In this document: positions 13,787 to 62,400 of the stretch, piece after piece
Layout of the letters: every line of letters starts with the position of its first letter
Position numbering within the stretch: the stretch's first letter is position 1
Assembly: GCA_024137785.1 (NCBI GenBank)
Contig: JAHRHZ010000140.1
Span: 12,418,986 to 12,482,985 of the forward strand
Reading direction: 5' to 3'
DNA: 64,000 nt
Source of the DNA: Ginglymostoma cirratum
Taxonomy: Eukaryota
Made by a program: the position numbers and the translations under genes
The notes under the pieces: model-generated
Database searches by the model: none
Told to the model about the DNA's origin: nothing
The model's input: the letters and a program-made list of their open reading frames with translations, nothing else

Positions 13787-13888
13787 ACACAAAAACAAAT
13801 TGCTGGAAAAGCTCAGCATGTCTGGCAGCATCTGTGAAGAAAAAATCAGAGTTAACATTTTGGGTCCGGTGACCCTTCCTCATAACAT
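13787..13888 (-). mobile_element. Mini-Penelope element with decayed hammerhead motif and 13-bp TSD
   Basis: TSD TAGTTCATTAAAG at 13774-13786 and 13889-13901; minus strand gttatgaggaagggtcaccggacccaaaatgttaac. Confidence 0.82.
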
Positions 13889-14436
13889 TAGTTCATTAAA
13901 GTCCTCTTGGAAAGGAAACATGCCATTCATACCCAGTTTGACTAATATAGTGGAGGAATGGACATTCAGTCTGGCTCAGTTGAGAAGACGGTACTGCAGG
14001 GCAAATAAGTAACGCAAAGATGTAATATTAATTGTTCCAATCCATAATCTATCAGTAAACTGATAATAGCACACCGTTGTCCAGACATCTGAAAATCTGA
14101 CACAGGCCCCGAGCAGAGTTACCCTGTAGCCTGATCTTGTTAAATATGTTTGCTAAAAGAGAACTCTTCTGTGTCCATCTACAGACCTGGGAAGAACTAA
14201 ATAAAAATCTGAAAAGTATGTCCTTTAAAAGTAAACATGTTTCTCTTTCTTTTGTAGTTTTTTCTTTGCCTGATACAATTATGTCAACTGAAATAGGCTC
14301 ATTCAGGTGATGGGTACACTTCCTTCAGTGAAGAGCAGCACAGCTAAACTTGACACTGCTTTCCATTAATGTCCACACACATACTTTCCATCAGGGGTCA
14401 CTATACTGCAATCAGATGGAGCCTATTTGATTTCTA

Positions 14437-15007
14437 GGATAACAAGTTGTACAGCTGGATGAACACAGCAGGCCAAGCAGCATCATAGGAGCAGGAAAGC
14501 TTGACGTTTCGGGCCTAGACCCTTCATCAGAAATGGGGGAGGGGAAGAGGGTTCTGAAATAAATAGGGAGAGAGGGGGAGGCGGATAGAAGATGGATAGA
14601 GGAGAAGATAGATGGAGAGGAGACAGACTGATCAAAGAGGCGGAGATGGAGCCAGTAAAGGTGAGTGTAGGTGGGGAGGTAGGGAGGAGATAGGTCAGTC
14701 CAGGGAGGACGGACAGGTCAAGGGGGCAGGATGAGGTTAGTAGGTAGGAGATGGGGGTCAGGCTTGAGGTGGGAGGAGGGGATAGGTGGGAGGAAGGACA
14801 GGTTAGGGAGGCGGGGACGAGCTGGATTGGTTTTGTGATGCCGTAGAGGGAGGGGAGATTTTGAAGCTTGTGAAGTCCACATTGATACCATTGGGCTGCA
14901 GGCTTCCCGAGCGGAATATGAGTTGCTGTTCCTGTAACCTTCGGGTAGCATCGTTGTGGCACTGCAGGAGGCCCAGGATGGACATGTCATCTGCGGAATG
15001 GGAGGGG
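14437..15007 (-). mobile_element. 5'-truncated Penelope-like element (GIY-YIG C-terminus, 3' UTR, hammerhead)
   Basis: MSILGLLQCHNDATRRLQEQQLIFR.GSLQPNGINVDF as at 50552-50670; ~21-bp TSD gatgga(gc/a)ctatttgatttcta at 14415-14436 and 15008-15028. Confidence 0.9.
14499..14533 (-). ncRNA. Minimal type I hammerhead ribozyme motif with intact core
   Basis: ttt-CTGATGA-A-GGGTctagGCCC-GAAA-C-GTC-aag. Confidence 0.72.
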
Positions 15008-15684
15008 GATGGAACTATTTGATTTCTAACCTTGTTTTTAACTGACGTGTCTGACTGCTAACTAGCTTGGTTAAAATAAGCCAAGTCCAGTATACATCTG
15101 GGGCCAGCCCCTTCCTTAGATGTTCTTCTAAGATCTTCTTAGCCTGTCCGCTAAGCAATTATTACTCTTTAAACATTCAGCAGGAAATATTTATTTTTGT
15201 CCACAAGGTGGCTACAAATCTCCTGTTTCACCTTCCACTCTGCAGGAACTGTTCTGGGTGCACTAACATAACTCTTCCCCACTCAGCCCATGAGGACAGG
15301 AAACAATGAGAGAGGTTAATTTAGTACTGCTGCTTCTTAAAATGTACTGATCAGTGCTCCAATACATTATAAAGTCTTTAAGACGATTAAAGGCATTTAC
15401 AAAGTAGATAGAGATAAATTGTTTCTTCTGTGTGAAGAAATGCTTCAGGACCACTCCATCCCCTCTCCCACACCAATCAAGGTTTATTCGGAGCTTTCAA
15501 AATTCAGACTGATAGATTTTTGTTGGGTAAGGAAGTTCATAGTTAAGGAACCTAGGTGGGATAAATGGAATTAAGGTACAGCTTAGCCACAATATAACTG
15601 AATACAAGTTGAGTTGATGAGTTCCCCTCTGATGTTTCTAAATATCAAGTGAATTTATGCATGGGACAGTGAGCTCTCGTTATT

Positions 15685-17660
15685 ATAGAGTCATGGAAAC
15701 GGACCCTTCGGTCCAACCAGTCCCTCCCGATCACGTGCCCAAACCAAACTAGTCCGACCTGCCTGCATTTGGCCCATATCCTTCCAAACCTTTCCTTTTG
15801 ATGAACTTATCCAAATTTCTTCCAAATGTAACTGACCTGCATTCACCACTTTATCTGGCAGTTCATTCCACATACAAACCATTCTCTGTGTAAGAAGATT
15901 GCCCCTCATGTCCTGTTTAAATCCTTCTCCCTTCACTTTAAAAATATGCCCCCTAGTTTTGAATGCCCCCACCCTATGGAAAAGACCCTTGCTATTCACC
16001 ATTTCTATGCCCCTCATGATTTTGTAAACCTCTACAAGGTCACCTCTCAACCTTCTACGCTCTAGTTAAAAAATTCCCAGTCCATCTTTATAATGTCAGA
16101 AATCACACGACACCAGGTTATAGTCCAACAGGTTTATTTGAAAACACAAACTTTTGGAGACTCACTCCATCTTCAGGTGTTACTGAGGTGGTATCAGACA
16201 CAGAAAGTATAAGTAAAAGATCAAAGAGTCACACCACTGATGAGGATGTATTAAACAAACATAAGATGTTGTTAAGTCTTTAATCAGTTAGAAGGTTTTA
16301 ACTGAAGCGTTGTTTAGAATCTGTTTGTGTTTTGGTTTGGAGCCAGATTAGTTTTATTTCTACAGTAGGAATTTATAAAAAGCCATATTGACTGACTGTC
16401 TATAAATTGTGTGCTTTTTGAACAAAATAGAATGCAAATACAAATACACCCCATCTACTTATGTGTGTGGGGAGTGGAGAGAGAGAAAGAGATGGGGAAG
16501 ACAGAGTGACAGTGTGTGTGGGAGAGAAAGAGAGAGTGTGTGTGTGTGTGTGGAAGAGACAGAGTGTCTGTGTGGGAGAGAGACAGAGCGAGGCAGTGTG
16601 TGTGTGAGGGAGAGAGTGTGAGTATGTGCACATGCGTGGGACAGAGTGTGTGTGGGAAAGTGTGTGTGTCTGAGAGAGAGAGAGTGTGTGTGACACTCAC
16701 ACAAATACACACACACACATTTGCAGATACATTCTATTTTGTTCAAAAAGCACACAATTTATAGACAGTGAGTCAATGTGGCATTTTATAAATTCCCATT
16801 TTAGAAATACAACTAGTCTGACACCAAACCAAAACACAAACAGCTTCTAAACAAGGCCTCACACCTAACATGCATTGTCTGACCTAAAATGTCATCTCTT
16901 CTTTACACTGATAAAACGTTTGGTTCTCTCAGGACAGTGACTGGAAAGGAATTCAGGGATTTACATATACAAATTAATCAATTAAAATCTTCTAAATGAT
17001 TAAAGATTGAACAGCCTCTTAGGTTGTTTAATACATCCTCATCCAGTGTTGTGACCCTTTGATCTTTTACGTATAAATTCTGTGTCTGATACCACTTCAC
17101 TAACACTTGAGGAAGCAGCGAGGCTCCGAAAGCTTGTGTTTTCAAATAAACCTGTTGGACTATAATGTGGTGTTGTGTGATTTCTGACTGTGTCCACCCC
17201 AGTCCAACACCGGCAACTCCACATCATATCATTATAACTCAAACCCTCCATTCCTGGTAATATCCAGATAAATCTTCTCTGAACCCTCTCCAATTTAATA
17301 ATATCCTTCCTGCAGCAGGACGACCAGAACTGTACATAGTACTCCAGAAGAGGTCTCACCAATGTCCTGTACAACCTCAACATGACATCCCAAATCCTAA
17401 ACTCAAAGGTCCAGACGATGAAGGCAACAGTGCTAAACCATCCTGTCTACGTGGACACAAATTTCAAAGAATTATGTACCTGATCCCCTAGGTCTCTCTG
17501 TCCTACAACACCATTCAGGGCCCTGTCATTAACTGTAAAAATCCTGCCCTTGTCTGATTTACCAAAATGTAATACCTCGCATTCATCCAAAGTAAACTCC
17601 ATCTGCCTCACCTCAGCCCAGGGGGCCAACTGATTAAGATCGCTTTGTAATCTTAGATCA
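15685..17660 (-). mobile_element. CR1 LINE 3' portion, split by the palindromic PLE derivative at 16094-17227
   Basis: ORF2 C-terminal remnants: LYRTLVRPLLEYYVQFWS..DIIKLERVQRRF; RGDLVEVYKIMRG..TRGH.FKV..WNELP. Confidence 0.88.
16094..17227. mobile_element. 1.1-kb palindromic non-autonomous PLE derivative with a central GA/GT microsatellite and 10-bp TSD
   Basis: 16094-~16450 is the reverse complement of ~16700-17189; TSD ATCTTTATAA 16084-16093 / ATCATTATAA 17228-17237; hammerhead-like motif in each arm. Confidence 0.85.
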
Positions 17661-18108
17661 CAAATCCCTAATGTTTTGAACATTGCTATTAAATCTCTTA
17701 TAAATCATCTTCAACAAGAAAGACAGCTTTTTCAGGATCACTGTATAAAGCCCTAGTTCCTGGTACCACTGCAGTAAATCTCCTTTAGTACCCTTTCCAA
17801 AGCCATGACATTTTTCTTAAAATTGTGCCCCAGAATTGGACACAGCAGATTGATGCAGGTTTAGCCTTCCCTACATTTTACTCTGTAACCCTGTGGATAA
17901 AGGATAAATCACTCTGTTTTCTCAGATTGTAAAGCTCACAGATGGCGAAGGTATTTCATTTTACAGATACATTAAAAACCCTCAAAGCAGATAGCTCAGC
18001 CTGGACTTGGAGGTGAACTGGTGGGTCCGTGGCCTGTATGGTGCTATATCAAACTGGGCGACACATGCACAAATACAGTGGAATGAGTCTCTGCCAACCT
18101 CAGGAATG

Positions 18109-18470
18109 TCACCAGTCCCTCTCATGTGGCTTCCTGTAAGGCAGTCCCAGGTGCTCAAAGATGTCTTGCTCGGTTGTCGTGGAAATGATTACTCCTGTGG
18201 TGAGTTTGGCACTGCCCTTCCTAAGGACGTGGTAGTTCAGCGAGTGCTCTGACAGGCTCATGCCCTTCGTCTTGGCCAAAGCCCGCATGGACCGATTAAA
18301 ATGTGCTGATCCAGTAAAGTACATCAGGGCACAGGCAAACTCACTGTATGGTACCACAATGATGTCAAGCCTCCGGTGACGGTGCCCAGGACCTGGAAGC
18401 CGGCAAACTCCCAGATATTTCTTCTGATCCCCGCTCTCTTCCTGGCTGACCAGGTCATCTGTTAGAAATC
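18109..18470 (-). CDS. POLL: POLL last coding exon, third catalytic Asp and thumb
   Basis: ttgaaag|GATTTC; [10 protein letters not shown]...[35 protein letters not shown]...PHERDW*. Confidence 0.97.
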
Positions 18471-21400
18471 CTTTCAATAACAAATTCAAGAATCAAACAT
18501 TGTCCAGAAAATATTCTGTGCTTGTGAAAATGTGAGATCTCTGTTTAAAAGCTACTCAGGAGAACCTTGAGTCAGGTGTACCAAGGTTAAATACAGAATA
18601 AAATTTCTACACTGCTCTCTTCAATCACACCCAGGACTGATACAATATTGGGTTATTTACTGAGTAAAGCTTCCTCTACTCTTTTAAACAGAAAGTAATG
18701 CATCCTCTACACTGTCCTCATTAAACACTCTCAGGGCAGGTACAGCCTGGGGTTAGGTGCAGACTAAGCTCCTTCTACACTGCACCATCGGACACCTGCA
18801 GGGCAGCAACTGCTGGGTCTTGTTCTGGATGATTTCCTCCAACAATATACATAAGTCCCAACCTTAAACAGTTGCCCATACTGCATTAAATAGTGACATT
18901 GTAGAAACCAACAGACAACTGCAGAGCACTCAGGCAGCGTGGAACTCTGCACCATCCAGGAAACTCATCAGTGGCAAATCTGAGGAATGTTTAATAATCC
19001 TTAATTTTTTTTTCTTTTCTTTATTCATTCACAGGATGAGGGCATCGCTGGCCAGGCAGCATTTATTGGCCATCTCAATTGCTCAGGGGGCAGTTAAGAG
19101 TCAACCACATTGCTGTGGGTCTGGAGTCACATGTAGGCCAGACCAGGTAAGGATGGCAGTTTCCTTCCCTAAAGGACATTAGTGAACCAGATGGGTTTTT
19201 CCTGACAATCAACAAATGGACTCATGGTCATCATTAGATTCTTAATTCCTGATATTTACTGAATTCAAATTCCACAATCTGCCCTGGTGGGATTTGAACC
19301 CGGGTCCCCAGAGCATTATCTGGGTCTCTGGATTAACAGTCCGGTGATAATATCATTAGGCCATAGTCTCCCCCGAATGATCCCTGATAGATTAGGCCTG
19401 AGGCTAAACAAATGAAAGGTGCATTTTTTGGGGGTGTGAGGGTAACAATAAGCTTCATGTCCATTACAGAACACTGATGATATTTTTGCTCCAAAACTCT
19501 GCCTGTATCCATTGTCCCATTTTTGTCTGAACACACTTACCTGTGTCCCTCAGACCAGCAAGGATCTTACTGAGGACACCTTGGTGCGATTTTCCATCTG
19601 GATGTGTGATGAGGACGTCTACATCACCACAGGTGGACCTCCCACGTCGATAGGAGCCACAAGCTACAGCAATCAGAGATGGATCGATTGACTGAGCCAT
19701 GTCCCCCACCTGGAAAACAAAGATAAGAAATACTGCTAATGAGAGATACTGGATCACTGCTTATACCCCTCTCAGCTCTGACAATGGATTACTGCTCATG
19801 ACCCTCTCTGCTGACAATGGATTACTGATAATCACTCACTCACCCTCAGTTGTTTCTCCTGTTCCTTATCTTTGGCACTCTCTTTCCTCAGTCTCATGAT
19901 CTTCTTTCATTCCCATCAAAGCTCCTGAACTCTTGCCTTCCCGAATGCAATTGGCAATTTCCCTCAACTCCACCTTCTAAGTGCTCCTAAACGGTCACTT
20001 CTGAACATATTAATGCTGAAATTTTGCAGTGAAGCCACAGACTGTAACTGTATTGTGAGGCAGCTGAAAGACTCTGGAGAGCTTCAGTCAATCCTACCTA
20101 ATCCATTTGACATACAGATAGACGGTATAATCCTGTTAATTCCTTTCTTAACTCCTTACAGCCTCAATAAGGTCCCAGTCGTTGCTGTCAATAATCCTAT
20201 CACTGAACAATGGCCTTTGCTCCCGTCAAACTGACAACTGTTGAGTCCTCTGATTGATTTGTGCACTGAGCTGATGTTTGCTCCCTCTAATCCAGGATAG
20301 GAGGCTATTCCCTATTTACACAGCACAGTGAAGTCGGAATGACACACTGCACCCCTTCCCTCCCCTGCTGAGCAACATTCCGTGGGTCTGATACTTCATG
20401 GCAGATGCCGTGGTTTTGAGCTTCTTGTTGTTCCCATGACAACTGCTGTGCATGTGTCGGTAAGCTCAGCAGGATTTGCCAATCACAGTGGAGTATATAT
20501 CTCTATTAGAGAATCACTTTCAACAGATTCCATTATTGCTTTCTCTGTATTAAATACTCCTGGGTTCTCCACCAAGTTCATTTAAAACCTGAGGACTCTG
20601 AGCTGCTCTTGTTTGTCGTGGTGTCACCTGTTTTGTGGGAAGGATTGGTATATTCCCTAGTCTGCAACATCAACAGCTTGAACTGATGTGTGCACCTGAA
20701 CACAAACAAAGTTCTCTGCAGGACCAGCAAATAAAATGTTGACACTGAGGCGGAAAAAGATATTTAGCCAAAGGATGGAATTCAATCCAAATAAGTGTGA
20801 GGCAACACACTTGGTCAGGACAGACAAAGCAAGGGAACACATGATGAATGATAGAAACCTGGGAGGTACTGAGGTTCATAGGGACCTTGGTCCATAAGTT
20901 CTTAAAGGTGGCGGGACAGGTAGATAAACTGGTTAAGAGCAGGGAGGTCATAGGTTATACTTTTAACTCTATATAAAACATTGGTTAAGCCACAGTGAGG
21001 GTATTGAGTGCACATTACAGAAGGGATGTAATTGCATTGGACAGGGTGCAAAGGAGATTTACCAGGATGCTGTCTGGGCTGGAGAATCTAATGATGACCA
21101 TGAAACGGTTGTTGATTGTTGGAAAAACCCATCTGGTTTACTGATGCCCTTTGGGGAAGGAAATCTGCCATCCTCAACTGGTCTGGCCTCGCCGTGACTC
21201 CAGACCCACAGCAATGTGGTTGATTTCTAACTGCCCTCTGGGCATTAGGGATGGGGAATAAATACCGGCCTGGCCAGTGATGCCCCCATTCCATGAAAGT
21301 GTATTGAGTGCACATTACAGAAGGGATGCAATTGCATTGGACAGGGTGCAAAGGAGATTTACCAGGATGCTGTCTGGGCTGGAGAGTTTTAATTATGAAA

Positions 21401-24400
21401 AGAGATGGGATAGACTGGGTTTGTTTTCCTTGGGGCACAGACTAAGGGGCGTGACGGTTGTATTGTATAAAATAATGATGGGCATAGATAGGGTAGATAG
21501 GAAGGAACTTTTCCCTTTGAATGGAAGGGTCAATGACCAGGGGCACAGATTTAAGGTAAGAGCCAGATGGTTAAGAGGGGATGTGAGGAAACATCTTTTC
21601 ATCCAGAGGGTGTTGGGAATCTGGAACTCACTGCCTGTGAGGGTAGTAGAAGGAGAAACCCTTATACTTAAGAAGCATTTAGTTGTGCACTTGCGATGAT
21701 GCCAAGGCATACAAGACTATGGGCCAAGTGACAGAAATGGGATTAGAATAGATTAGATTGTTGCTTCTGACTAGTGCAGACTCAATAATCAAAGGGCCTT
21801 TTTCTGTGCTGCAGACTTCTGTGGCACGACGACTATGACTCTATGATCAAATGTTTGATTGAAGGTGCAGGTTTTAAGGAATGTCTTGCAAAGTAGACAG
21901 GCAGTGAGGTTTATGGAGGGAGTTACAGAGTCATAAAGTCATACAGCATGGTAACATTCCCTTTGGTCCAACCAGTCCATGCCGGCCATAATCCCGAAGT
22001 AAACTAGTCCCATCTGCCTGCGCTTGGCCCATATCCCTTCAAACATTTCTTATTCACTAGACTATTAATCCAAAGGCCCTTTAATGTTTTGGGGACTTGG
22101 GTTCAAATCACACCATGGCAGATGGTGAAGTTTGAATTCAATATAAGACTGGAATTAAGAATCTAATGATGACCATGAAATGGTTGTTGATTGTTGGAAA
22201 AACCCATCTGGTTTACTGATGCCCTTTGGGGAAGGAAATCTGCCATCCTCAACTGGTCTGGCCTCACCGTGACTCCAGACCCACAGCAATGTGGTTGACT
22301 TCTAACTGCCCTTTGGGCATTAGGGATGGAGAATAAATACTGGCCTGGCCAGTGATGCCCCCATTCCACGAATTAAAATATATTAAAAGAAAGAGAGAAG
22401 GTTGACAGATGGCGTGATGAGATACAGCAGAGTATTGTCAGCGTGGATTGTGTCACAAAGAAGATAGCAAGTAAGTGAGACAGGAGGGCAAGGACAGTTA
22501 GTTGGATGGCATTGATGGTTTGATTGCAAAGCTGAGTGATGCTGACAGCACAGGTTCAATTCCCGCACTGGCAGAGATTACCACTGAAGGTCCCACCTTC
22601 TGAACTTCAGCCTTGAAATGGGGGTGACCCTCAGGTTAAACTCACCACCACTTATCTGTTTCTAATGAGAGAGCAGCCCTAAAGTCCTCTGGAACTATGG
22701 TGACATTACCTTTGCCTTTATAGGATTAGGCAGGAAAAAGTGGTTGGTTTCCTTGAAGGGCAATGTAAGACCTTCGTGGATTTTTCAAAACAGCTTCCAT
22801 AAGATTTTTTAAAATTGAATTTTACAACTGGCCATGGTGGAATCTCTATTCACAACTCTGTGTTTCCGTATCCCCAAATCCCAAGCAACATATTTCCTCT
22901 CCCCAGAAACATTACAAGTTCGGCCTGTTTCTGAAACCTTGCCCCCAGATCCTCTATCCTGCAGATCATCTTCAATGCACCATGAATACCCTCAAATACT
23001 GCCTCCAAATTCCCAAATCCTGGAATATATGCAGAAAATAATAGCAAAAACTCAATAGTTCTGGCAGAGAGTGAAAAACAGCCAATGCTCGAGCTCTGTG
23101 ACCTTTCATCATAATTGGGAAACGTTAGAGAGGTAATAGGTTTTGAGCAAAGCATAGGTTGGACAAGGATGGGGAAGATCTATGATAGGCTCGAAAACAG
23201 GGGAGATGGGATGACAGAAAGGTTAGTCGTCCGGGACAAAGGGAATAGAGATGGGGCAGGAAAAGCAGCAAAGAATCAAAAGGTGTCCCGAAAGCAGGTA
23301 CTACTAGCTGAGAGAAAATAACAAAAGAACCAAAGGAAAGATAACAAAATGCAGAACAGATTATGGTCAGAAATTATTGAACTCAACATTGAGTTGCGAA
23401 GGCTGCAAAGTGCCTAACAGGAGATAAGATAGTATTCTGAAGTTTACATTGAGTGTCAATGGAACAGTGCACTAATCTAAGGACAGAAATGTCAGTATGA
23501 GAGCAAGGTGGAGAATTAAAAGACAGGTTGCAAGAAGCTCAGCGACACATTTGCGGACTGAACAGAAATGTTCTGCAAAGAAGTTATCAAGTCAACATTT
23601 GGTCTTCCCAATGTAGATACTGTGACCGTCAGTGGGCTTCTAATGAATATTAGTTATTAATAATGATCAATATAACCAGAAATCGAGACAGAGAACTCAA
23701 GAAAGGGAAAGGCGAGCCTAACTAGGACCTATCCAGATACCCATAGCAACACCTTTTACTCAAAAGGAGTGAAGTTGAAGGAAAAGTTACTCAAAGTGGG
23801 AATGAATTCTGCTAGGAGGTGGAGAGTAATGTTAAATGGGGATTGGTTGGGCCTCCCCAAATCACATCCCCACATTCTAAAATCCTAGCCAAGCCCGTCT
23901 ATAAATTTGGAAACAAAGTACATAGCACACACAACTTTTCCACAGTGGGACAGTAGGGATTTTCAGTTGAACTTGTTTGGGGGGAATAAGTAAGAGATGT
24001 GAACAGTTCTTTCAGATCACCAGCACAAGCACAGTAGAATAGGGAATGAGAAATAGAGAAATGAGGAACAGTTCTAACAGACAGAAGACACAGTGATGAG
24101 GGGTAAAATGGCCTTTATCTACATTATAAAATTCAATAATTCTCTTTTCTGATTGACCACACCATTGCGAAAAAGCAACAATCACATGCTTGTAACCAAA
24201 ACCAGCAGGTACTCACCATTTTTTCAATCTCCCCTGCCTCTTCCCGGGGCATTCGGTCTAGGAAATCATGATAGTGTTTGAGGCCAATGATCTGCTGCTT
24301 AGTCAGACTAGCTTTCATCTGAATATCATCCAAAGTTCTGAATCCCTGTAAAACATGTCTAAGTGTTAAAGCTTCTCAATCTAATGTGACAATAGGAAAA

Positions 24401-48135: not shown

Positions 48136-48576
48136 CTGGAGGAAAAGGAAACAAAGCATTGATTAGTTCCACAACCTGTGCTTTGCTGTTATTTGCACAG
48201 GAAATGCTGCAGTACACTAAGGCTAACGGACTGGTTCAGGACAATCTCCTGCTTCAAACTTTATGTTTGCTGCCCTCTGCTGGAATACCAGAATCTCAGT
48301 AACTTCTCTCAATCTCTTATTTTTCACAGGAGACTGGACACTGATCCAACTGCAGTGAGTGCCTGATTAACAGTGGCTATATTTTGTATGACGAGCAAGT
48401 TTGGGATAGGTGTTGATGTAATAGAAATATTTCAGCAATACATAAGCCAATGAAGATAATTTGTAGGGCTCAACCATAAAGACTGGGCAGATTGAGCTAG
48501 AAAAGGTAACCTGTAAAGAGGTTTGATGGTAGACGTGAAAACATTTCTACGTGCAAGGAAGTCCAAAACTAGAGGA

Positions 48577-51225
48577 AACCCCCAGACCTCCCCCTTATTG
48601 AGGACGAACGGTCAGTCCTCAGTAAAGGGCTCACCTTTGTCCCCCTCCACCCACACATCAACGAATACCGCTCCCACTTGGACATTGAGCAGTTTTTCCG
48701 CCGCCTCCGTCTCCATGCTTACTACTTCAACCATGAACCTAACCCTCCCTTTACTGACCCCTTCTCCCTCCTCCAACACAAGCCCTCCTCCTGGACACCA
48801 CCCCAAGGCCTCCTACCCTCCCTTGACTTCTTCATCTCCAACTGCTGTCGAGACATCAATCGCCTCAACCTCTCCACCACTCTCACCCACTCTAACCTCT
48901 CCCCCTCCCCCGCAGAACGTGCAGCCCTCTGCTCCAATCCCAACCTCACCATAAAACCCGTGGACAAGGGAGGGGCAGTTGTAGTATGGTGCACTGACCT
49001 CGACATTGCTGAGGCCAGGCGCCAACTCTCCGACACCTCCTCTTACCGCCCCCTGGATCATGACCCCACCCCCGAGCACCAAACCATCATCTCCCAAACC
49101 ATCCACAACCTCATCACCTCAGGTGACCTCCAACCTCATCATTCCCCAACCCTGCACCGCCCGCTTCTATCTCCTTCCCAAAATCCACAAACCTGAATGC
49201 CCCGGTCGACCCTTTGTCTCCACCTGTTCCTGCCCCACCAAACTTATCTCCACCTACCTCGACTCCATTTTCTCCCCCTTGGTCCAGGAACTCCCTACCT
49301 ACGTCTATGACACCACCCAGGCCCTCCACCTCCTCCAGAACTTCCAATTCCCCAGTCCCCAGTACCTCATTTTTACTATGGACGTCCAGTCCCTATACAC
49401 CTGCATTCCCCATGCAGATGGCTTAAAGGCCCTCCGCTTCTTCCTGTCCCGCAGACCTGACCAGTCCCCCTCCACTGACACCCTCATCCGCTGAGCCGAA
49501 CCCGTCCTCACCCTCAACAACTTCTCTTTCAATTCCTCCTTTTTCCTACAGACAAAGGGGGTGGACATGGGTACCCACGTGGGCCCAAGCTATGCCTGCC
49601 TCTTTGTAGGTTACGTGGAACAATCCCTCTTCTGTACCTACACTGGCCCTAAACCCCACCTCTTCCTCCGTTACAGTGATGACTGTATCGGCGCCACCTC
49701 GTGCTCCCACAAGGAGCTCGAACAGTTCATTCACTTCACCAACACCTTCCACCCCAACCTGAAGTTCACCTGGACCTCTCTGTCTCCATCTCGGGTAACC
49801 ACCTAGAAACCGATATCCATTTCAAGCCCACCGACGCCCACAGCTACCTAGAATACACCTCCTCCCACCCACCTTCCTGCAAAAGATGCCATCCCCTATT
49901 CCCAATTCCTTCGCCTCCGCCGCATCTGCTCCCAGGATGAGGCATTCCACTCCCATACATCTCAGATGTCCTCGTTCTTCATGGACCACAACTTCACCCC
50001 GCAGTGGTCAAGAACGCCCTCGACCGTGTCTCCCGCATTTCCCGCAACTCATCCCTCACACCCCGTCCCCGCAATAACAACGAGAAAAGAATCCCCCTCG
50101 TCCTCACGTACCACCCCACCAACTCCGGATCCAACGCATCATCCTCCGACACTTCCACCATCTGCAATCCGACCCCACCACCAAAGACATTTTTCCCTCC
50201 CCACCCTTGTCTGCTTTCCGGAGGGACCACTCTCTTAGTGACTCCCTTGTCCGCTCAACACTCGGCACTTTTCCCTGCAACCACAGGAAGTGCTACACCT
50301 GCCCCCACACCTCCTCCCTCACCCCAATCCCAGGCCCCAAGAAAACTTTCCACATCAAGCAGATGTTCACCTGCACATCTGCCAATGTGGTATACTGCAT
50401 CCGCTGTACCCGTTGTGGCCTCCTCTACATCGGGGAAACCAAGCGGAGGCTTGGGGACCACTTTGCAGAACACCTGTGCTCGGTTCGCAACAAACAATTG
50501 CACCTCCCAGTCCTGAACCATTTCAACTCCCCCTCCCATTCCTCAGACGACATGTCCATCCTGGGCCTCCTGCAGTGCCACAATGATGCCACCCGAAGGC
50601 TGCAGGAACAGCAACTCATATTCAGCCTGGGAACCCTGCAGCCCAATGGTATCAATGTGGATTTCACAAGCTTCAAAATCTCCCCTTCCCCCAACCGCAT
50701 CCCAAAACCAGTCCAGCTCGTCCCTGACCTGCTGTGTTCATCCAGCCCCATGCTTGTTGTCCCTGCCTTCCTAACCTGTTCTTCCTCTCACCTATCCCCT
50801 CCTCCCACCTCAAGCCCCACCCCCATCTCCTAGCTACTAACATCATCCTGCCCCCTTGACCTGTCCGTCCTCCCTGGACTGACCTATCTNNNNNNNNNNN
50901 NNNNNNNNNNNNNNNNNNNNNNNNNNNNNNNNNNNNNNNNNNNNNNNNNNNNNNNNNNNNNNNNNNNNNNNNNNNNNNNNNNNNNNNNNCCAACCTACAC
51001 TCACCTTTACTGGCTCCATCCCCGCCTCTTTGACTTTTCTGTCTCCTCCCCACCTATCCTCTCCTCTATCCATCTTCTATCTGCCTCCCCCATTTCTGAT
51101 GAAGGGTCTCGGCCCGAAACGTCAAGCTTTCCTGCTCCTATGATGCTGCTTGGCCTGCTGTGTTCATCCAGCTCCACACCTTGTTATCTCGGATTCTCCA
51201 GCATCTGCAGTTTCTATTATTTCTG
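48577..51225 (+). mobile_element. Near full-length Penelope-like retrotransposon (RT + GIY-YIG endonuclease), disrupted by frameshifts and stops
   Basis: ERSVLSKGLTFVP; KPVDKGGAVVVW; FYLLPKIHKP..PGRP; TMDVQSLYTCIPH; QTKGV.MGTHVGPSYACLFVG; RYSDDC; HFKPTDAHSYL; VVYCIRCTRCGLLYIGETKRRLGDHFAEH; 3' hammerhead and terminal tail. Confidence 0.95.
51093..51127 (+). ncRNA. Minimal type I hammerhead ribozyme motif with intact core; predicted cleavage after GUC at 51123
   Basis: ttt-CTGATGA-A-GGGTctcgGCCC-GAAA-C-GTC-aag. Confidence 0.75.
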
Positions 51226-52922: not shown

Positions 52923-55699
52923 CTGCAACAGAAGAGACAGATTAGAACAGTGATTGCATGACATCCAGTACTGACAGAAGAGATGGCAAAACTGCTGATC
53001 TCATAAGCACCACATGTTTTTGTAAGCACCTGAAATATACCGCTACTGTTCGACACAATGTATTTATGAACGGTGAATAAAAAATAGAAAAAAGAGTAAA
53101 GGGAAAGGGAGACATTGGGAAAGAAAAAAACAAACATGATGAGCAAGTTTTTATGTGGTTTCTGAAGGAAAATACAAGGGGTTGATGAGAGGTCTGGGCT
53201 TTTGGGAGAAAGAATGAGCTTTCATTCCCACAGTGACTTTCATTACTTTGGGACATCGCAAAGTGCATTTCAGTCTAATAAGTACTTTGAAGCACATCAT
53301 TGTTGTAAGGTCGAAAGCTTGCCAGCAAAAGTATGCTCAAAATCTCACAAATGACAATGCCATAATGGCAAAGTAATCTTTTGATTATGTTTTTCAAAGG
53401 ATAATTTCTGGCCCAGGGTACTCTATGCATCTTCCTTCAGTCTAAAAATAACCATTCACCATTACTGTCTGTTTCCTGTCACTTAGCCAACATGCTTTTA
53501 CTTCATGGGGTTCAGCTTTGCAGGGATGTATATTATGTGGCACTTTATCAAAACTGTTTGGAAATCCATAAGCATCATGCAAACCATAATCCCACTGTGA
53601 ATCAATGAACGACTGATTCTCTACTAAAGTAATTCTCTCTCTCATCAAGGGCAATCAGTCTTGGATGACAAATTCTGGCTTTGTAAGTGATGGCCATGCT
53701 GCATACAATTTTTAAAAAGTTCTCTCCTCCTCCACTCACCTTCAAACATTTAATTCCCCTTCTCAACAGACATCAATCCAAGTCTTTTCAACAATGATGA
53801 CTAATGCAAGTCTCATACCTTAGCTACGTTTGGCCCCTGTGCTTGTTGTCCAGGGTTGGTAGCTGTTTTATGATTCATCTCACATGTTTCATTGTTTTAA
53901 GCACCTGTGTTATGGGTGGGCAGAGGAGGACAATCATAATACAGTAGGGAGGGTAGCCACTCACCCCAACATGCCTATGCCAGCTTTTCGAAAGAGCTTT
54001 TCAATTAGTTTCTTTCCTTTGCGCTTTCCATTAATTTTTTTCCATTTCACACAATTGTCCAATTCACTTTTGAAAGTTATTATTAAAATCTGCTTTCACT
54101 GCCCTTTCCACCAGCACATTCCAGATCCCAGCTCCTCGTTCTGTCATGAGGAAGCCATCTTCCTCATTGTGACTTTGTGGGGTGGGTGGGTGTATGTTTG
54201 TTTAGGGGTGTATGGAAGGAAATGAACAGCAAATATGCATAATGAAAACCACTGGCAGTATAAGGCAGCTCAGCGATTCAAACTATCTCAGTGTTGATGA
54301 AGACAGCCTCATTAACTTGGAGGATTCAGCTGACAGTGCAGTACAGTCACAGGATCACTGCTGTGTTTACTATGAATGCTGGAGATTAAGTGAGTATCGA
54401 CAGAGCTGTAGACTATGCAAGAAACCATTAAAAAGCTGCTGAGTCCATTAAAGCATTCTCAACCAGGGATAGTCTAATTCTTCTCCTTGCTGTATTTATT
54501 CATTCATCCTTAGAATATAAGCATCAATAGCAAGATCAGCATTTATTGCCTATCCCTAATTGTCCCTACTTAGTTGGTTTTACAAGTTGATAAAGGACTA
54601 ACATCTTGCAGTCTAGCTGATAAAGTTACTCTTGAAGTGCTGTTAGAGAGTGATTCAAGGCTCTAACCCAGTGAAGACGAATGATGGTGGAGGTGGTGGT
54701 GTCCCACACATATGCTACCCTTGTTGTTCTAGGCAGATGGTTACCTCCACAACATTGCCCAATTCTGCACCTACTTCAGGTAATTGACAGCTGAAACCCT
54801 CATACATCCCTTGCTATCAAGATACAATTGTTCCAATGTACTCCTAGTTGACCTTCCAAATTCTATACCCTCCCTGCAAATTACTCATAATTTTGCTGCA
54901 TGTGTCCTAATTCCCATCAAGTCCCATTTGTCCATCACTCCTGTATTTACCAATTTGACTCCCAGTTTTGCAAATATAGTACTTTGATTTTAAAATCACT
55001 CACCCTTCTTTGTAAATTTCTCCAGCCTTAAGACGTCCTGAGATATCTAATGCTCTGCCAATTCAGGTCTCTTCAGAATCTCTGAATACGATCAATCCAG
55101 GAATGGTGGCCATGTTTTCAGCTGCCTAGACTCCAAGCCTTGGAATTCACTCCCTAAATCCCTAGATCCCCTTTCCTCCTTAAAGACACTTCTTAAAACC
55201 TACTTCATTTGACCACGTTGCTCTGTGTCAAACTTTGTTTGGTAATGTTTGTTGAAAGCCAGGAATGCCTTATTACGTTAAGGGTGCTATCCATAAACAG
55301 GTCATTTCTGTTGTTGTTTACATGGTTCAATTAAAGCAGCCTTGGTAAGTTTCTCCAAGAGACCTGGTAGATGGAACACACTGATGCAGTGAGAGTGCAA
55401 TGTTGGTGGAAGGAGTGGGTGCTCAAGGTGCTGAATGGAATGCCAATCAAATAGATCACAGAATTGTTATGGTGCAAAATGAGGCCATTTGGCCCTTTGA
55501 GCCTGCACTGGTTCTATTAATTACTGCCAATCTACTCCTATTCCCCCATATCCTTGCACACTACTTCTATCCAAACAACAATCCAATGCCATTGCGAATG
55601 CCTCAATTAAACCTGCCTCCACCACCTTGCCAGGCTGTGTATTCTTTACCCTAAGTACTTGCTGTGTGAAACCATTTCTTCTCACGTCACTCTTGCTGA

Positions 55700-57525
55700 T
55701 CAAGTGTATTCCAGGATGTTGAGGGAAGTTAGGGAAGAAATTGCAGCGTCCCCTAGCAGAGATATTTGTATTACCTTTAGCCACGGATGAGGTGCCAAGG
55801 AATGTTGTGCCGTTTATTAAAGAAGGCTGTAAACAGACGCCTGGGAACTACAGACTGGTGAGTCTGACATCAGTGGTGGATAAATTGTTGGAGGTAATTT
55901 TGAGAGTTAGGATTTATGTCCATTTGGAGAGGCAAGGACTGCTTAGGGTAGTCAGCATGGCTTTGTGCGTGGGAAATCGTGTCTTGCAAACTTGATTGAC
56001 TTTTTTGAGGATGTAACCAAAAAGATTCTTGAGGGCAGAGCGGTAACACTATCTACATGGACTTTTGTAAAGCTTTTGACAAGGTTCCTTATAGTAGACT
56101 ATTTAGCAAGGTTAGATCACATGGAATACACAGAGAACTAGCAATTTGGATACAGAACTGGCTCGAAAGTAGGAGACAGAGTGGTGGTGGAGGGTTGTTT
56201 TTTGGACTAGAGGCCAAGACCAGCAGAGTTCTGCAGAGATTGGTGCTGGATCCACTGTTGTTTGTCATTTATATAAATGATTTGGATGAGAATTTAGGAG
56301 GCATGGTAAGTAAGTTTGTGGATGACACCAAAATTGGTGGTACAGTCAACAGTGTAGGTGGTTATCGGATATTACAAAGGGATCTTGATCAATTGGGCCA
56401 ATGGGCTGAGTAGCAGATGGTTTAATTTGGATAAATGTTAGGTATTGCATTCTGGTAAAATAAACACAGCGCAGGACTAATACAGTTAATGGCAGGCCCT
56501 GGATAATGTTATCAAACAGAGGAACCCAGGAGTTCAGGTACATAGTGTTTTGAAAGCTGAATCGCAGTTAGACAGGATGGTTAAGAAGGCATTTATCACA
56601 CTTACCTTCATTGCTTATATCAATGAGTTTAGGCGTTAGGATATCATGTTGAGGTTGTACAAGACATTTGTGAGGGCACTTTTGGAGTACTGTGTACAGT
56701 TCTGGGTGCCCTGCTATTGGAAGGAAATAACTAAACTGAAGAGCGTTTCAGAAAAGATTTACCAGGATGTTAACGGGACTGGAGGGTTTGAGTTGTAAGG
56801 ACAGGCTGGAGCATAGGAGGTTGATGGGTGAGCTTATAGAAGTTTATAAAATAATGAGGAGTATAGATAGAGTAAATGGTAGTTGTCTTTACCCTAGGAT
56901 GGGGGATTTCAACAACAGGGGGCATATTTTTAAAATGAGAGGAGAAAGATTTTAAAATGACACGCGGGGCAAATCTTTTTACACAGAGGGTGGTTCGCGT
57001 GTGGAATGAACTTCTTGAGGAATTGGTGGATGTGGATACAATTACAATGTTTAAAAGACATTTGGATAAGTGCATGAATAAGAAAAGTTTGAAGGGATAT
57101 GCTCCAGGAGTAGGCAGGTGGGACTAGTTAGTTTGGGATTATGTTTGGCGTGGACCGGTTGGAATGAAGTGTGTGATTCTATGAGGGGTATAGATAAGGT
57201 GAATAGGAAAGGTCTTTTCCCTGGAGGCTGGGGTGTTCAAAACCAAAGGGGCATATTTTTAAGCTGCGAGGAGAAAGATTTAAAAGGGACCTGAGGGGCA
57301 ACCTTTTCACCGAGTGGTTTGTATGTGGAATGAACTGCCAGAGAAAGTGGTAGATGCAGGTATAGTTACAACAATTAAAATTCATTTGGACATGTACACG
57401 AGTAGGAAAAGTTTAGAGGGGTATGAGCCAAATGCAGACAAGTGGGACAGTTTGGTTTGGGAAACTTGATTGGCATGGACGTGTTGGATCAAAGGGTCTG
57501 TTTCGTGCTATATGACTCTATGCTA
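55700..57525 (+). mobile_element. CR1 LINE ORF2 fragment followed by a second CR1 3' end
   Basis: PGNYRLVSLTSVVDKLLE; MDFCKAFDKVP; LLFVIYINDLDE..KFVDDTKIGG; 3' tail repeated at 57180-57525. Confidence 0.9.
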
Positions 57526-58269
57526 CATTTTCACATCACGTTAAATCTACGCTTTCATTCTTTTTCTCTTTTGAACGGGAACAATGTTTTCCCATCTACT
57601 CTGGAGTACTTTGAACTGATTGATATTCAGCTCCTTTAGTGTTGTTGGAGCTGAATTCATCCAAGCAAATGAAGAGTATTTCGTCATTTCACATGATGGT
57701 GGAGGGACTTTGCGAAATCAAGAGGTGAGTCACTTGCCACAGAATGCAATGGTTCTGACCTGTTCAATATGGACAAATTCCAGCTTTTACTATTCAGTGG
57801 AAAGGAGTAGGGAGCCAATACAGAACATCGCTTCATCATAGGTATCTAAACAGCAGAAAGACTCTGGTTCAAGCTTGGTCTGTGTTTTGTCAGAGATTTG
57901 AAATAAGTTGGGCAGTAAGGAACACTACACTGGATCCTCCACGTCCTCAACCATCTCTATCTCTGCAATGCCTCCCAGCTCTGCATACCCTCAAGATTTC
58001 TCTACTCCTGTACTCTGGCCTCTTTCATCATCACAATCCCCATTGCTCAATCAGTGATAGACAGGATTTCAGTGCCTGGGCCGTAAGCTCTGGAATTCCA
58101 TCCACAAACCTCTCTGAATCTCTGCTCTTTTCAGATAGTCTTTCAAATTCAACTCAATGAACACTTGGTCACCTGGTCTTATGTTTCCTGTGGCTCAGTG
58201 TCAATTTTACATTGATAATCGTTCTTATGAGGCAGATTAAAAGTGCTATACAGTTACAAACTTTTTTGC

Positions 58270-58670
58270 ATCTAATCTCATGCTGCATCTGCCTTGGGAG
58301 TGTTTGATGAGGTCACTGTGGAAAGAGCTTTACTCTGTATCCAGCCCTGTGCTGTACCTGTCCTAGGAATGTTTGACGACGACAAAGTCGAGGACGCTTT
58401 ACTTACAGTTTACTTTCAGTTTAAAAGGATAGAGAAAGCTTTACTCTTTATTTAAGCCTGTGCTGGGAGTGTTCAATAAGACACTGTGGACAGAGCTTTA
58501 CTCTATATCTAACCCCGGGCTGTTTCTGTCCTGGGAACATTGAACGGGGACAGTTAGATTCAGAGGGACCTTTACCCTGTATCTAACCCAGTGCTGTATC
58601 TGTTTTGGGAGTGTATGTTGGAGACAGTGTAGAGGGTGATTTACTCTGTATCTAACCTGTAACATACTGT
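58270..58670 (+). repeat. Degenerate ~65-70 bp tandem repeat (agagctttactctgtatctaaccc..gtgctgt..ctgggagtgtttg..gacagtgtagaggg), about 5-6 units
   Basis: Units seen directly; dispersed short arrays also at ~18570-18800(-), 41680-41800(-) and 47025-47130(+). Confidence 0.8.
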
Positions 58671-58749
58671 CAGTGTTTTCCACTACCTCACAACCAATAT
58701 TTGCTAATCTGGTGAACATACGGAAATACTTCAAGCACATTTGTATAAT

Positions 58750-60245
58750 GTCAGCAGTGGGTAAGTTGTTGGAGGAGATTCTGAGAGACAGGATCTGCAT
58801 GTATTTGGAAAGGCAAGGACTGATTAGGGATAGTCAGCATGGCTGTGTGTGTGGGAAACTGTGCCTCACAATTTTATTTAATTTTTTAAAGAGGTGGCCA
58901 AGAAGATAGATGAAGGCAAAATGGTAGACGTTATCTATATGGACTTCAGCAATGCGTTCGACAAGGTTCTACATGGTAGACTGGTTAGTAAGGTTAGGTC
59001 ACATGGGATCCAAGAAGAGCTAGCCCAATTGGATACAAAATTGGCTTGATGGTGGAGTCAGAGGGTGGTGGTAGGGAGTTGTTGTTCAGACTGGAGGCCT
59101 GAGACCAAGAGTGTGCCACAAGGATGAGCGCTGGGTCGACTGTTCATTTTTTATATAAATGATTTAGATGAGAACTAAGGAAGCATTTTTAGTAAGTTTG
59201 TGGATGACACCAAAATTACAATGAAGAAGGTTACCTAAGATTACAACGGGATCTTGATCAAATGTGCCAGTTGGCCGAGGAGTGGCAGATGCTGTTTAAT
59301 TCAGATAAATGCAAGGTGTTGCATTTTGCTAAGACAAACCAGGGCAGGAATTACACAGTTAGTTAATGGTCAGGCTCTGGAAGGTGTTTTCAAACAGAAA
59401 GACCTAGGGGTGAATGGTACATAGTTCCTTGAAAGTGGTGTCATGGTGGTGAAGGCGGCATCTGGTACGCTTGCCTTCATCAGTCACAGCGGTGAATATG
59501 GAGTTGGGATGCCATATTACAACTGTACAAGACATTGGTAAGGCCACATTTGGAGTATTGCACACAATTCTGGGTGCCCTTCTATAGGAGGGATATTGTT
59601 AAACTTGAGAGAGTGCAGAAAAGATTTACAAGGATGTTGCTGGACTGGACGGTTTGAGCTATAGGAAGAGGTGGAAAAGACTGGGGCTATTTTCTCCGGA
59701 ACGTCGGAGGCTAGTGGTGACCTCATGAAGATTTATAAAATCATTACAAGCATTGAATAGGGTGAATAGGGTCTTTTTCCTATGGCAGGGGAGTCCAAAA
59801 CTAAAGGGCACAAATTTAAGGTGAGGCGAGGAAGATTTAAAAAAAGGACTGAGGGGCAACTTTTTCATGCAGAGGCGTGAACGGAATGAGCTGCCAGAGG
59901 AAGTGGTGAAGGTGGATACAATTACAACATTTAAAAGGCATCTGGACGGGCATATGAATAGACAGGGTTTAGAGAGATATGGGCCAAATCCCGGCAAATG
60001 GGACAAGGTCAGGTCGGGACATCTGGTCGGTGCAGACGAGTTGGTCCAAAGGGTCTGTTTCTGTGCTGTGCGAATCTATAAGTCTATGGTAGAAGTGAGC
60101 AAAAGACATTTTGAAAGCCGGGTGGATAGAAAAGATTTAGTGGGATATGGGCCAAACACAAGCAAATGAGACTTGTTTATTTTAGGAAACTTGGTCAGCA
60201 TGGATGACTTGGACCGAAGGGCCTGTTTCCGTGCTGTATGATACA
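58750..60245 (+). mobile_element. CR1 LINE ORF2 fragment with duplicated 3' end
   Basis: SAVGKLLEEILRDRI..DSQHG; YMDFSNAFDKV; KFVDDTKI; LVRPHLEYC; NELPEEVV. Confidence 0.9.
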
Positions 60246-61429
60246 GTACTGAATCTGTACAATTTTCACAATAATGCATGTGCATTTCCAGCTGTCGCAT
60301 TGACTTTTATTGCCACAAGATGGCAACAGTATCCCACAGGACAGACATGTTACATTTAAACTGGAGCTGAACTGTCCATAGGCTGTTCAGGTGAACCCGT
60401 ACCTCTGCACTGTCATCTGGCTTTGTTCTGCCATCAGACTCTGCTCATATTTGCTCTCTCTTTGGTGTGACATATCAATTCAGAAAATAATTCTTCCAGA
60501 TTTACAGTCTTAGTTAATAATATTCTCCAGCTCCAATTCAGACATATTCCTTACAAAAATGCCAATTCCTTAGGACTGGCTCTCAGGGCTCGTTAGTTTG
60601 GACCATGAGAGCAGTCTGCTATCAGAGTTAGAGGCTTCTAAATTCAAACCCTGCTCCAGGGCCTGAAAATGTAATCACCGCTGACACTGCAGCCAGCATC
60701 GATAAAATTCTGTTGCACCAGGACTTCTTTCCTTTATGTGGGACTTGGAAACTGAGCACAGTTTATAATTTTGGCATATTACAAACGAGTGTTGTTGGCA
60801 ACACAGAAGTACGCTCCAACTCCTAACTGCCTATGAAAAGATGGTAATGAACTGCCACTTTTAAACTTCTGCAGTCCTCAGGAGCGTAGAGACACCCAAG
60901 TGTTGTTAGGGAGAAAATTCCAGGATTTTGAACCAATGTCAATGAAGGAATGGTGATATAGTTCTAAGTCGGAACAGTGAGTGGCTTGGCAATGAACTTG
61001 TGATTTTTCCATGTATCTGCTGCCTTCCTCCTTTAGATGGTAAAGACTAAGTGTTTGGAAGGAACAGCTTCACAATAGCACTAATATAAACCACAGTAAG
61101 TAGAACATCATCTTGGCTTGATAGCAGCAGCTTCTCAATGGAGAATACCACTCAGACTGCTACTGCATGGTAGAAGTGTGAAACTGCTAGCTTCATCTGC
61201 TGCTGTAATGTTTTGAAACACCTGGGTTATCCGAGACAGACTGGGCACTTTTCAGGAATGAAAGTAGCAGCCTGAGGCTAATTCATACATTTGTGTGATA
61301 TGCACTGAGTAATGCTCTGATCTGGGTAGCTGTTAACCAAAGTGTGTCCCAGGAATTACACTAACAATCAGTTTAAAATTCCCAGTCAGGCTTATTATGT
61401 GGTGCTCTTGCAAATGCTAGAAGATAGAA

Positions 61430-62400
61430 GCATCGAAAACAGAAGCAGGAATAGGCCATTTGGCCCCTCGAGCCTGCTCTGCCATTCAACATAGTCATGG
61501 CTGATCATCCTAATCCTGTTTTCACTCTATACCTCTTGATCCCTTTAGCCCTAAGACTTATGTCTAACTCGTTCATGGAAATTCAATATTTTTGCCTCAA
61601 CTGTTTTCTGTGGCAGATAATTCCGCAGGTTCACCACTCTCTGGATGAAGAAATTTCTCCCCATCTCAGTCCTAAACGGCTTATCCTGTATCCTTAAACT
61701 GTGATCCCAGTTCTGGACACCACAGTCACTGGGAAGATCCTTCCTCCATATACACTGTCAAGTCCTGTTAGAATTTTATAGGCTTCTACGAGATCCACCC
61801 TCGTTCTTTTAAACACCAGTGAATATATTCCTAGATAACAAGGTATGGGGCTGGATGAACACAGCAGGCCAAGCAGCATCATAGGAGCAGGAAAACTTTC
61901 TATATGATTCTGCTTGGCCTGCTGTGTTCATCCAGCCCCATACCTTGTTATCTCGGATTCTCCAGCATCTGCAGTACCTTTTGTCTCTGAATATATTCCT
62001 AGCTGGTCCAGTCTGTCTTCATACATCACTCCTGCCATCCTTGGAATCAGTCTAGTACACCTTCAAAGCACTCTCCCTCCACAGCCAGAACATCCTGAGT
62101 TGAGACCAAAACTGTACACAAAACTCCAGTTGTGATCTCACATGGGGCCTGTACAAATGCAACAAGACACCCCTGCTCCTGTACTCAAATCCTCTTGCTA
62201 GGCAGGCCAAATGACCATTTGCCTTCTTCACCGCCTGCTGCACCTAATTGCTTACTTTCAGTGATTGGTGTACAAGCACAACCAGCTTCCACTGCACTAC
62301 ACCCCCAATTTATTGCTGTTCAGATAATAATCTACTTCCTGTTTTTACTACTGAAGTGGATAACCTCACATTTATATAATTCATCTGTCATGCATTTGCC
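61430..62400 (-). mobile_element. Decayed CR1-clade LINE 3' fragment
   Basis: QQAVKKANG.LA..ARGFEYRSR.VLL.LYR..VRSQLEFCVQFWS; DLVEAYKILTGLD. Confidence 0.8.
61835..61987. mobile_element. ~150-bp hairpin mini-PLE with 15-bp TSD, nested in the CR1
   Basis: Near-perfect inverted arms; TSD TGAATATATTCCTAG at 61820-61834 and 61988-62002. Confidence 0.9.

Follow-up and report, generated by a model that had tools for sequence, protein, structure and literature searches.

Here, we analyse a 64,000-nt window of the Ginglymostoma cirratum genome (contig JAHRHZ010000140.1, positions 12,418,986 to 12,482,985; coordinates below count from its first base), in which insertions derived from Penelope-like elements (PLEs) carry hammerhead ribozyme motifs. 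The original prediction, made from the sequence alone, had taken the short non-coding insertions among them for a ribozyme-processed class resembling short interspersed elements (SINEs) or retrozymes. We propose that they are probably PLE end-pieces and by-products rather than a class of their own processed by ribozymes. A derivation of non-coding hammerhead repeats from PLEs, as non-autonomous elements, has itself already been published, also for one cartilaginous fish.

Penelope-like elements and their insertions

A profile search of the window gave 19 matches to motif families A and B, which with further comparisons resolve into about 14-15 insertion events. By type, there are five short copies of unit length, two whose truncation point lies slightly within the ribozyme, two small fold-backs, two inverted composites, a 1.1-kb inverted insertion of family C, and five longer copies with remnants of the pseudo-long terminal repeat (pLTR) and/or the open reading frame (ORF). 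The 3' ends fall into two classes about 36-40 nt apart, the module being the minimal hammerhead ribozyme (min-HHR) plus ~95 nt (short form) or ~135 nt (long form); in family B the short form ends near ...GTTTTTGT and the long form continues to ...CAGCATCCGCAGTTCTT.

A degraded, 5'-truncated PLE of family A occupies 48523-51225 on the plus strand. It retains frameshifted ORF remnants of a reverse transcriptase (RT) and, at the C terminus, a GIY-YIG endonuclease up to 50833, followed by a pLTR (50834-51092), an intact min-HHR (51093-51126; C3 at 51096, predicted cleavage after C17 at 51123), and a long-form tail to 51225. The last ORF piece matches GIY-YIG at E=5e-4, just under Pfam's cut-off, and upstream of that block, in ORF 50207-50833, lies the sequence CNHRKCYTC (a CX4CxxC linker). 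A CX2-5CxxC motif in the RT-endonuclease linker marks the Neptune and Nematis clades (PMC8557442) and, judged by this motif, the element is Neptune-type. The RT pieces gave no Pfam match even at E<=10; the fragment at 49006-49491 is 81% identical to a predicted protein (P0001) that matches RVT_1 at E=6.8e-6, and it also has a sawfish relative. With an RT followed by a C-terminal GIY-YIG domain, this element bears out the predicted derivation of the insertions from PLEs. An assembly gap within its pLTR (50890-50989) lies past the ORF stop (50831-50833) and affects no reading frame. Its flanks align collinearly with the paralogue at 15009-14438, in which ~12 nt separate the matching points; gaps were left unfilled.

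Four further copies, all on the minus strand, bear pLTR and/or ORF remnants. That at 14438-15009, of family A, is truncated in the GIY-YIG region and retains the ORF 3' end, the pLTR, an intact min-HHR (14533-14500; C3 at 14530, predicted cleavage between 14503 and 14502), and a short-form 3' end at ~14438. Two are diverged PLE ends, one (23046-23617) with a decayed ribozyme (C3 at 23112), a pLTR stretch of ~260 nt, and a remnant of GIY-YIG (37.6% identity across 85 aa), and the other (63470-64000) with a long-form tail, decayed ribozyme, pLTR, and an ORF remnant, extending beyond the window. The last, a family A copy at 12530-13045, is split by a gap (12580-12979) into a tail end (12530-12575) and an RT-region piece (12981-13045). 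Families A and B align along the whole ~135-nt tail and are therefore branches of one PLE group. B-type tails occur not only solo but also joined to pLTR and ORF remnants: the copies with ribozymes near 36815, 23116, and 63584 are longer copies with a pLTR, the latter two also with ORF remnants. The copy at 23116 had been a candidate short copy and was rejected as such, given the pLTR and GIY-YIG remnant upstream of its ribozyme.

Two details of the pLTR-ORF junction can be added. About 40 nt at 14534-14574, including a TATA-like box, are present in the 14534 copy and the diverged 63584 copy and missing from the 51092 copy (51088-51092); their loss, between two CCTCCCCC repeats, looks like a slippage deletion. 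An ATG ~14-22 nt past the cleavage site (..GATGCTGC..) is kept in families A and B (51137-51225; in B, for example, from 37084 onward), and in family A its frame is open to the end of the long-form tail. By analogy with the lizard element, whose ORF starts at the ribozyme, this ATG may be the start of the PLE ORF.

The predicted ORF-less copies of 100-160 bp with their own target site duplications (TSDs; 10-18 bp here) were found in family B, with the exception of the pLTR-bearing copy at 36815; in family C, the supposed short copies are the two arms of a single inverted insertion of 1.1 kb, with at least 350 nt in each arm. Three of the unit-length family B copies lie on the minus strand. That at 13787-13887 is a unit-length solo copy with a short-form 3' end and a 12-13 bp TSD (CTTTAATGAACTA); it starts at helix I (TGTT|ATGAGGA), has a decayed core (C3>A, G12>A, ACGT>ATGT), and coincides with a genome-wide boundary at 13882/13886. 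A second solo copy of unit length (35786-35922) has a long-form 3' end, the start GTGTT|CTGAGGA, the TSD CTTCC(C)TCCTTC, and the change A15.1>G, and an old unit-length copy at 3216-3336 has the start GGTT|CTGATAA, a long-form end, and no clear TSD. On the plus strand, the copy at 47197-47275 is truncated ~10 nt into the ribozyme and has a short-form end and a TSD of ~GCTATTATT. Contigs of a related species cover unique DNA beside the 13787-13887 copy (13864-14436) with ~2.5-6.5% differences, one of them beginning inside the element, and the insertion is probably older than the divergence of the two species.

The inverted structures are more complex. The insertion at 36676-37148 is a single head-to-head insertion with a 10-bp TSD, ACA(T/A)AAATAA: its minus arm (36676-37035) consists of a long-form tail, a ribozyme at 36816, and ~220 nt of CT-rich pLTR, and its plus arm (37036-37142) is unit-length and short-form. 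A reading of 36817-37035 as a captured intron or host DNA was rejected, this stretch being CT-rich pLTR that aligns with other pLTRs. The nested inverted structure at 39529-40348 surrounds an assembly gap (39719-40118). Its inner arms, of family D (39655-39718, minus strand; 40119-40245, plus strand), carry the half motif GAAACGTC and an AC-rich tail, and they are flanked by family B copies at 39529-39654 (minus strand, long-form, 5'-truncated within the ribozyme) and 40247-40348 (plus strand, short-form). Family D thus consists of GAAACGTC alone, 16 nt from each gap edge; its CUGANGA half would fall in the gap, which forms the middle of an inverted repeat (39639-39718 and 40119-40197, 92.5% identical) where continuity cannot be judged.

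Two family A fold-backs are smaller. At 27518-27678, the arms meet at a GGAAA/TTTCC microhomology beside G12 of the ribozyme, the left arm is short-form and the right long-form, and the TSD is 18 bp; at 61835-61988, the arms are unequal, again short-form on the left and long-form on the right, with a 14-bp TSD (GAATATATTCCTAG). Rfam microRNA models (mir-3926, mir-3127, and others) match 27524-27639 and 61841-61954 below threshold, with 29-41 bits against gathering thresholds of at least 80, and these were the only matches that came up in the Rfam search for hammerheads. As the loci are PLE fold-back insertions, such hairpins could be miscalled as microRNA genes by annotation pipelines.

The family C insertion (16094-17231, TSD ~ATC(T/A)TTATAA) lies within another repeat. 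Its arms, at 16094-16446 (minus strand, short-form end) and ~16700-17231 (plus strand, long-form end), each contain one decayed ribozyme (C3 at 16176 and 17107) and surround a GT/GA microsatellite-like stretch at 16450-16700. Such a centre agrees with the microsatellite bias that has been reported for Neptune-type PLEs, or with an expansion at the centre of a palindrome. The host is one copy of a different dispersed repeat of high abundance (..TATAACTCAAACCCTCCAGTCC..GTAAATCTTTTCTG..) that has no relation to the PLE tails, with copies at 17232-17300, 21031-21084, 21331-21407, 34384-34460, 37475-37526, 46038-46088, 56732-56808, and 59599-59663. A single-sequence nhmmer search with family C found no further copies, and extra blastn matches were rejected as belonging to this host repeat. 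In all five inverted structures (the two fold-backs, the two composites, and family C), one outer end is short-form and the other long-form.

Elsewhere in the window, 44759-44841 (minus strand) gives a weak tRNA-model match (26.7 bits against a gathering threshold of 29), and ARAGORN finds no tRNA there; it is possibly the decayed head of a tRNA-derived SINE.

Minimal hammerhead motifs and their decay

All 11 motif sites named in the original prediction were found in the window, on the expected strands and with the expected layout of helix I, CUGANGA, an extra base, helix II, GAAA, a 4-nt palindrome, and H17, family D being represented by half a motif. Parsing followed the coordinates of each copy and assigned its helix I, the core, the extra base, helix II, GAA, helix III, H17, and helix I'; a MAFFT alignment of the ribozyme regions puts family C out of register, and pair counting was not based on it. 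The helices differ between families and yet stay paired, as had been claimed: helix I is UUU/AAG in A, GUU/AAC in B, and AACAC/GUGUU in C, and helix II is GGGU/GCCC, GGGUC/GACCC, and GGAGC/GCUCC, respectively. Helix III is ACGU in A and B and AGCU in C (ACGT being deduced for B, and AGCT seen in the copy at 17102); given A..T, a palindrome would arise by chance with a probability of 1 in 4 in each family. All copies have the extra base between A9 and G10.1, which is an A or, in the family C copy at 16182, a T. The G10.1-C11.1 closing pair is found in seven of the ten parsed copies and, by eye, in the copy at 16182 (8/11), and is lost in the family B copies at 36816, 3336, and 23116. All four published min-HHR hallmarks are therefore present, namely the core boxes, the extra base at A9/G10.1, G10.1-C11.1, and the palindrome at 15.2-16.2, in agreement with the published description of minimal type I hammerheads (PMC4209133). 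A helix III hairpin is absent, and the palindromic 15.1-16.1 tetranucleotide would allow a dimer. Rfam gave no hammerhead match in the window at the gathering threshold or at E<=10 and hence no independent support, as is expected of motifs lacking the helix III hairpin; the identification draws on the descriptor given below and on the published hallmarks.

An intact core is restricted to the two family A copies (C3 at 51096 on the plus strand and 14530 on the minus strand), which read CAUUU CUGAUGA A GGGU-loop-GCCC GAA ACGU C AAG. The exact pattern CTGANGA..GAAACGT occurs twice against 0.02 expected, both times in family A, and a complete min-HHR descriptor (core boxes, the extra base, pairing in helix II, a palindrome in helix III, and H17 other than G) finds the same two sites only, with 0 matches in 200 shuffles. 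No family B or C copy is free of changes in the core or a helix, in line with the mutations noted earlier in individual copies, and the B and C consensus motifs are reconstructions found whole in no single copy of the window. The commonest changes, G12>A and ACGT>ATGT/ACAT, both fall at CpGs and look like neutral CpG decay after insertion. At 13887, the single family B copy tested, genome-wide reads and contigs restore C3 and ACGT. We infer that the ribozyme is intact in the source elements and not maintained in the copies.

Ends of the copies and their origin

In light of these copies being PLE-derived, how might the short ones have arisen? In the window, the start of five copies lies no more than 2 nt from the first helix I base (the ribozyme base) with unrelated sequence upstream, and in 2/5 the TSD abuts the base. 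The same holds genome-wide. Two RNA runs, same-species contigs, and related-species contigs were mapped to 13700-14900 at 80% likeness, and multi-copy depth was restricted to the elements. Matches ending at 13882/13886 were found in at least 517 same-species contigs, at least 1310 contigs of the relative, and at least 2663 RNA reads, counting the best-supported loose ends only, below which 1929 less well supported ones lie. Past this boundary the sequence is AT-rich with an agreement of only 0.36-0.40; it therefore represents many independent flanks and not a shared pLTR. Among the joints listed, opposite-strand (fold-back) joints cluster at the family A ribozyme base, 14533. Family B thus has a fixed 5' end and not the random 5' truncation points that would have spoken against the original prediction, and simpler explanations for this end than an independent lineage exist. 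An origin of the 5' end by splicing of an intron was rejected, as the short copies carry no upstream exon sequence.

At the other end, the genome-wide loose-end consensus at the short-form ends, 13797/13800 and 14438/14454, continues as the long form with an agreement of 0.5-0.7. PLE insertions have a 30-40 bp tail at one end (PMC8557442), and RT of a lizard PLE starts internally at two adjacent sites ~100 nt past the ribozyme and extends both DNA strands (PMC11167929). By analogy, the two classes of 3' end match the published PLE tail and would represent two internal RT start sites. Other signatures of PLE insertion are also present in the window: heavy 5' truncation, inverted 5'-truncated partners, a tail at one end, and variable TSDs.

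Several features of these copies speak against ribozyme processing. They contain the whole ribozyme and span the cleavage site, and the template RNA was therefore uncut there, which indicates that most inserted templates are not cleaved. No RNA read-end pile-up was seen at 14503|14502 or anywhere else in 13700-14900 in the two RNA runs, RNA depth there is equal on both strands, and no ends or back-joints at the cleavage site were found among those listed (polyA RNA-seq, a library type that loses small non-polyadenylated circles). TRF detects no tandem array in the 64 kb. Helix I is open, with 3-5 bp and no loop 1, and the canonical type I loop contacts are absent. The insertion at 36676-37148 shows that a pLTR-bearing arm (36816) and a unit-length arm (37036), mutual closest relatives at 83% identity, come from one event, and a separate non-autonomous master is therefore not needed. 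The unit-length copies lack pLTR sequence upstream of the ribozyme, and since the published PLE promoter is located in the pLTR they would not be self-transcribed; no tRNA, 7SL, or 5S-like part and no promoter of their own was seen in them. For these reasons we did not retain the retrozyme-like class of the original prediction. An independent non-autonomous lineage of this kind, processed by the ribozyme, perhaps via small circles, and mobilised in trans by PLE RT/GIY-YIG, would account for the fixed length, the discrete 5' and 3' ends, the separate TSDs, and the high copy number in two species, and a derivation of animal non-LTR retrozymes from PLE pLTRs, also in one cartilaginous fish, has been proposed (PMC7229834). 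We nonetheless regard it as quite improbable, as its copies would be expected in tandem, bounded at the cleavage site, built on canonical motifs whose loop contacts define retrozymes, and accompanied by an RNA end pile-up, and the neutral CpG decay of the copies and the one-event origin of the 36816 and 37036 arms also speak against it.

We suggest instead that these are ordinary insertion products of Neptune-type PLEs, mostly old and decayed, each of which would end with the pLTR-ORF junction module. Two-site internal initiation with extension of both strands would yield the short/long pairing of every inverted structure, and the unit-length copies would be run-off complementary DNAs (cDNAs), begun at the first internal RT start site and extended as far as the 5' end of a PLE RNA whose first base is the ribozyme base. 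Being promoterless, such copies would be dead on arrival, by-products that do not propagate themselves. The sharp 5' end suggests that the ribozyme lies at the very 5' end of the template RNA, and we favour a transcription start at the ribozyme base, driven by the pLTR, where the PLE promoter has been placed (PMC6765202; PMC2377424). Two diverged families have a TATTTAT/TATTTAC box 32-33 nt upstream of the ribozyme base, and in family A the base itself has an initiator-like CCATTTC; both are consistent with the 5' end of the short copies being a putative transcript start, a reading that we hold with a little less than even confidence. More tentatively, PLE transcripts may start exactly at the first helix I base with the ribozyme as a 5'-terminal module, cleavage removing a ~36-nt capped leader and perhaps switching the RNA between messenger and template, and the unit copies being run-off cDNAs. 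If true, these copies would document, across the genome, where the transcripts of a vertebrate PLE begin as well as its RT start sites.

Several observations count against parts of this account. RNA reads show no start pile-up at the ribozyme base in the two runs, which are dominated by read-through of thousands of copies. The start site of D. virilis Penelope is upstream of the ribozyme, at a distance of 46 nt plus a 75-nt intron (PMC4209133; PMC2377424), and a start at helix I is thus not the known arrangement. RNAfold and cofold of monomers and dimers did not recover the hammerhead fold (z about 0), although a nested model cannot represent the dimer, in which both helix I stems form a non-nested structure beyond cofold. 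Among the joints listed genome-wide, one contig has a head-to-tail mini-unit joint (14533>14439), as a retrozyme-like lineage would produce. Finally, in the insertion at 36676-37148 one arm reads into the pLTR and the other stops at the base, which an RT strong-stop would fit equally well.

In such a strong-stop, RT on a long PLE RNA would often fall off just past the ribozyme, because of PLE protein on the junction module or a folded or dimerised hammerhead, and the cDNA would then be joined to the target. Besides the sister arms just described, of which one runs 220 nt into the pLTR, this agrees with other arms that end at G12 beside the GC-rich helix II, with many opposite-strand joints inside the ribozyme (among those listed), and with a stepwise fall of family A depth upstream of the ribozyme in the same species; moreover, the protein of the lizard PLE is bound within the ORF's first 172 nt and helps the ribozyme (PMC11167929). 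A folded-helix roadblock, however, would be expected on the 3' side and not once the whole ribozyme has been copied, and across diverged subfamilies the stop varies by no more than 2 nt, so that we consider a strong-stop unlikely. Solo terminal repeats, left between the original TSDs when recombination between two ribozyme-plus-tail modules deletes the body of an element, would also give solo copies with TSDs and discrete ends on both sides, and PLEs are indeed flanked by direct pLTRs (PMC4209133; PMC8557442). This origin we hold to be very unlikely indeed: the repeats are only ~100-135 nt, fold-backs with unit-length arms (joints at 14533) cannot arise in this way, and the window holds no complete element with the module at both ends.

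Run-off from a start at the ribozyme base remains our preferred reading of the short copies, and their sharp 5' end is a small clue to the role of the hammerhead in the PLE life cycle. For annotation, such pieces are best masked as PLE ends and not called as SINEs, microRNA hairpins, or ribozyme genes.

Comparison with known systems

The PLE pLTRs of fishes, coelacanth, amphibians, and reptiles have been described as containing minimal hammerheads, which are mostly scattered singly or in close opposite-strand pairs (PMC4209133). The shark motifs resemble these metazoan PLE min-HHRs (Cervera and de la Pena 2014, PMC4209133) in their boxes, the A9/G10.1 base, G10.1-C11.1, their pLTR location, a helix I of 3-5 bp, a 4-nt palindrome without a helix III hairpin, and the occurrence of several families per genome. 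They differ in a helix II of 4-5 bp, against 7-8 bp in the schistosome min-HHR families, in their cartilaginous-fish host, and in being predicted ribozymes. Lunse et al. (2017), as cited in PMC6765202, is also among the closest work on PLE min-HHRs. Our literature search found no publication describing these shark families, which add families from a cartilaginous fish to the known PLE minimal hammerheads.

Two groups of non-coding hammerhead repeats are also similar. Schistosome Sm-alpha/Sj-alpha, as cited in PMC6765202, are short dispersed non-coding hammerhead retroposons like the shark units, with an internal promoter and a canonical active ribozyme, whereas the upstream pLTR is missing from the shark units and no promoter was seen in them. 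Animal non-LTR retrozymes (PMC7229834; bioRxiv 10.64898/2026.07.22.740005), like the shark copies, are non-coding, bear hammerheads, are related to PLE pLTRs, co-occur with PLEs, and exist as dispersed monomers. Retrozymes, however, form 150-450 bp tandem repeats with canonical type I loop-loop contacts and expressed circles (PMC7229834), whereas the shark copies are solo or inverted and have the minimal motif, and no circles or unit-length RNAs were seen in polyA RNA-seq, which loses small non-polyadenylated circles.

Close parallels also come from Poseidon, a PLE of Anolis carolinensis (Frangieh et al. 2024, PMC11167929). In both systems, the ribozyme lies at the pLTR-ORF junction, insertions end ~100 nt downstream at either of two points 30-40 nt apart, extension of both strands would account for head-to-head structures, and no RNA reads end at the cleavage site. 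The shark element belongs to another PLE clade, with its Neptune-type linker, and lacks a start codon at helix II. The Poseidon paper does not mention the discrete 5' end that the shark short copies have at the ribozyme base, and this sharp end, together with its tie to internal initiation, may be a new detail. The shark copies present, in natural insertions, the signature of two-site internal initiation that has so far been demonstrated biochemically only for the lizard element.

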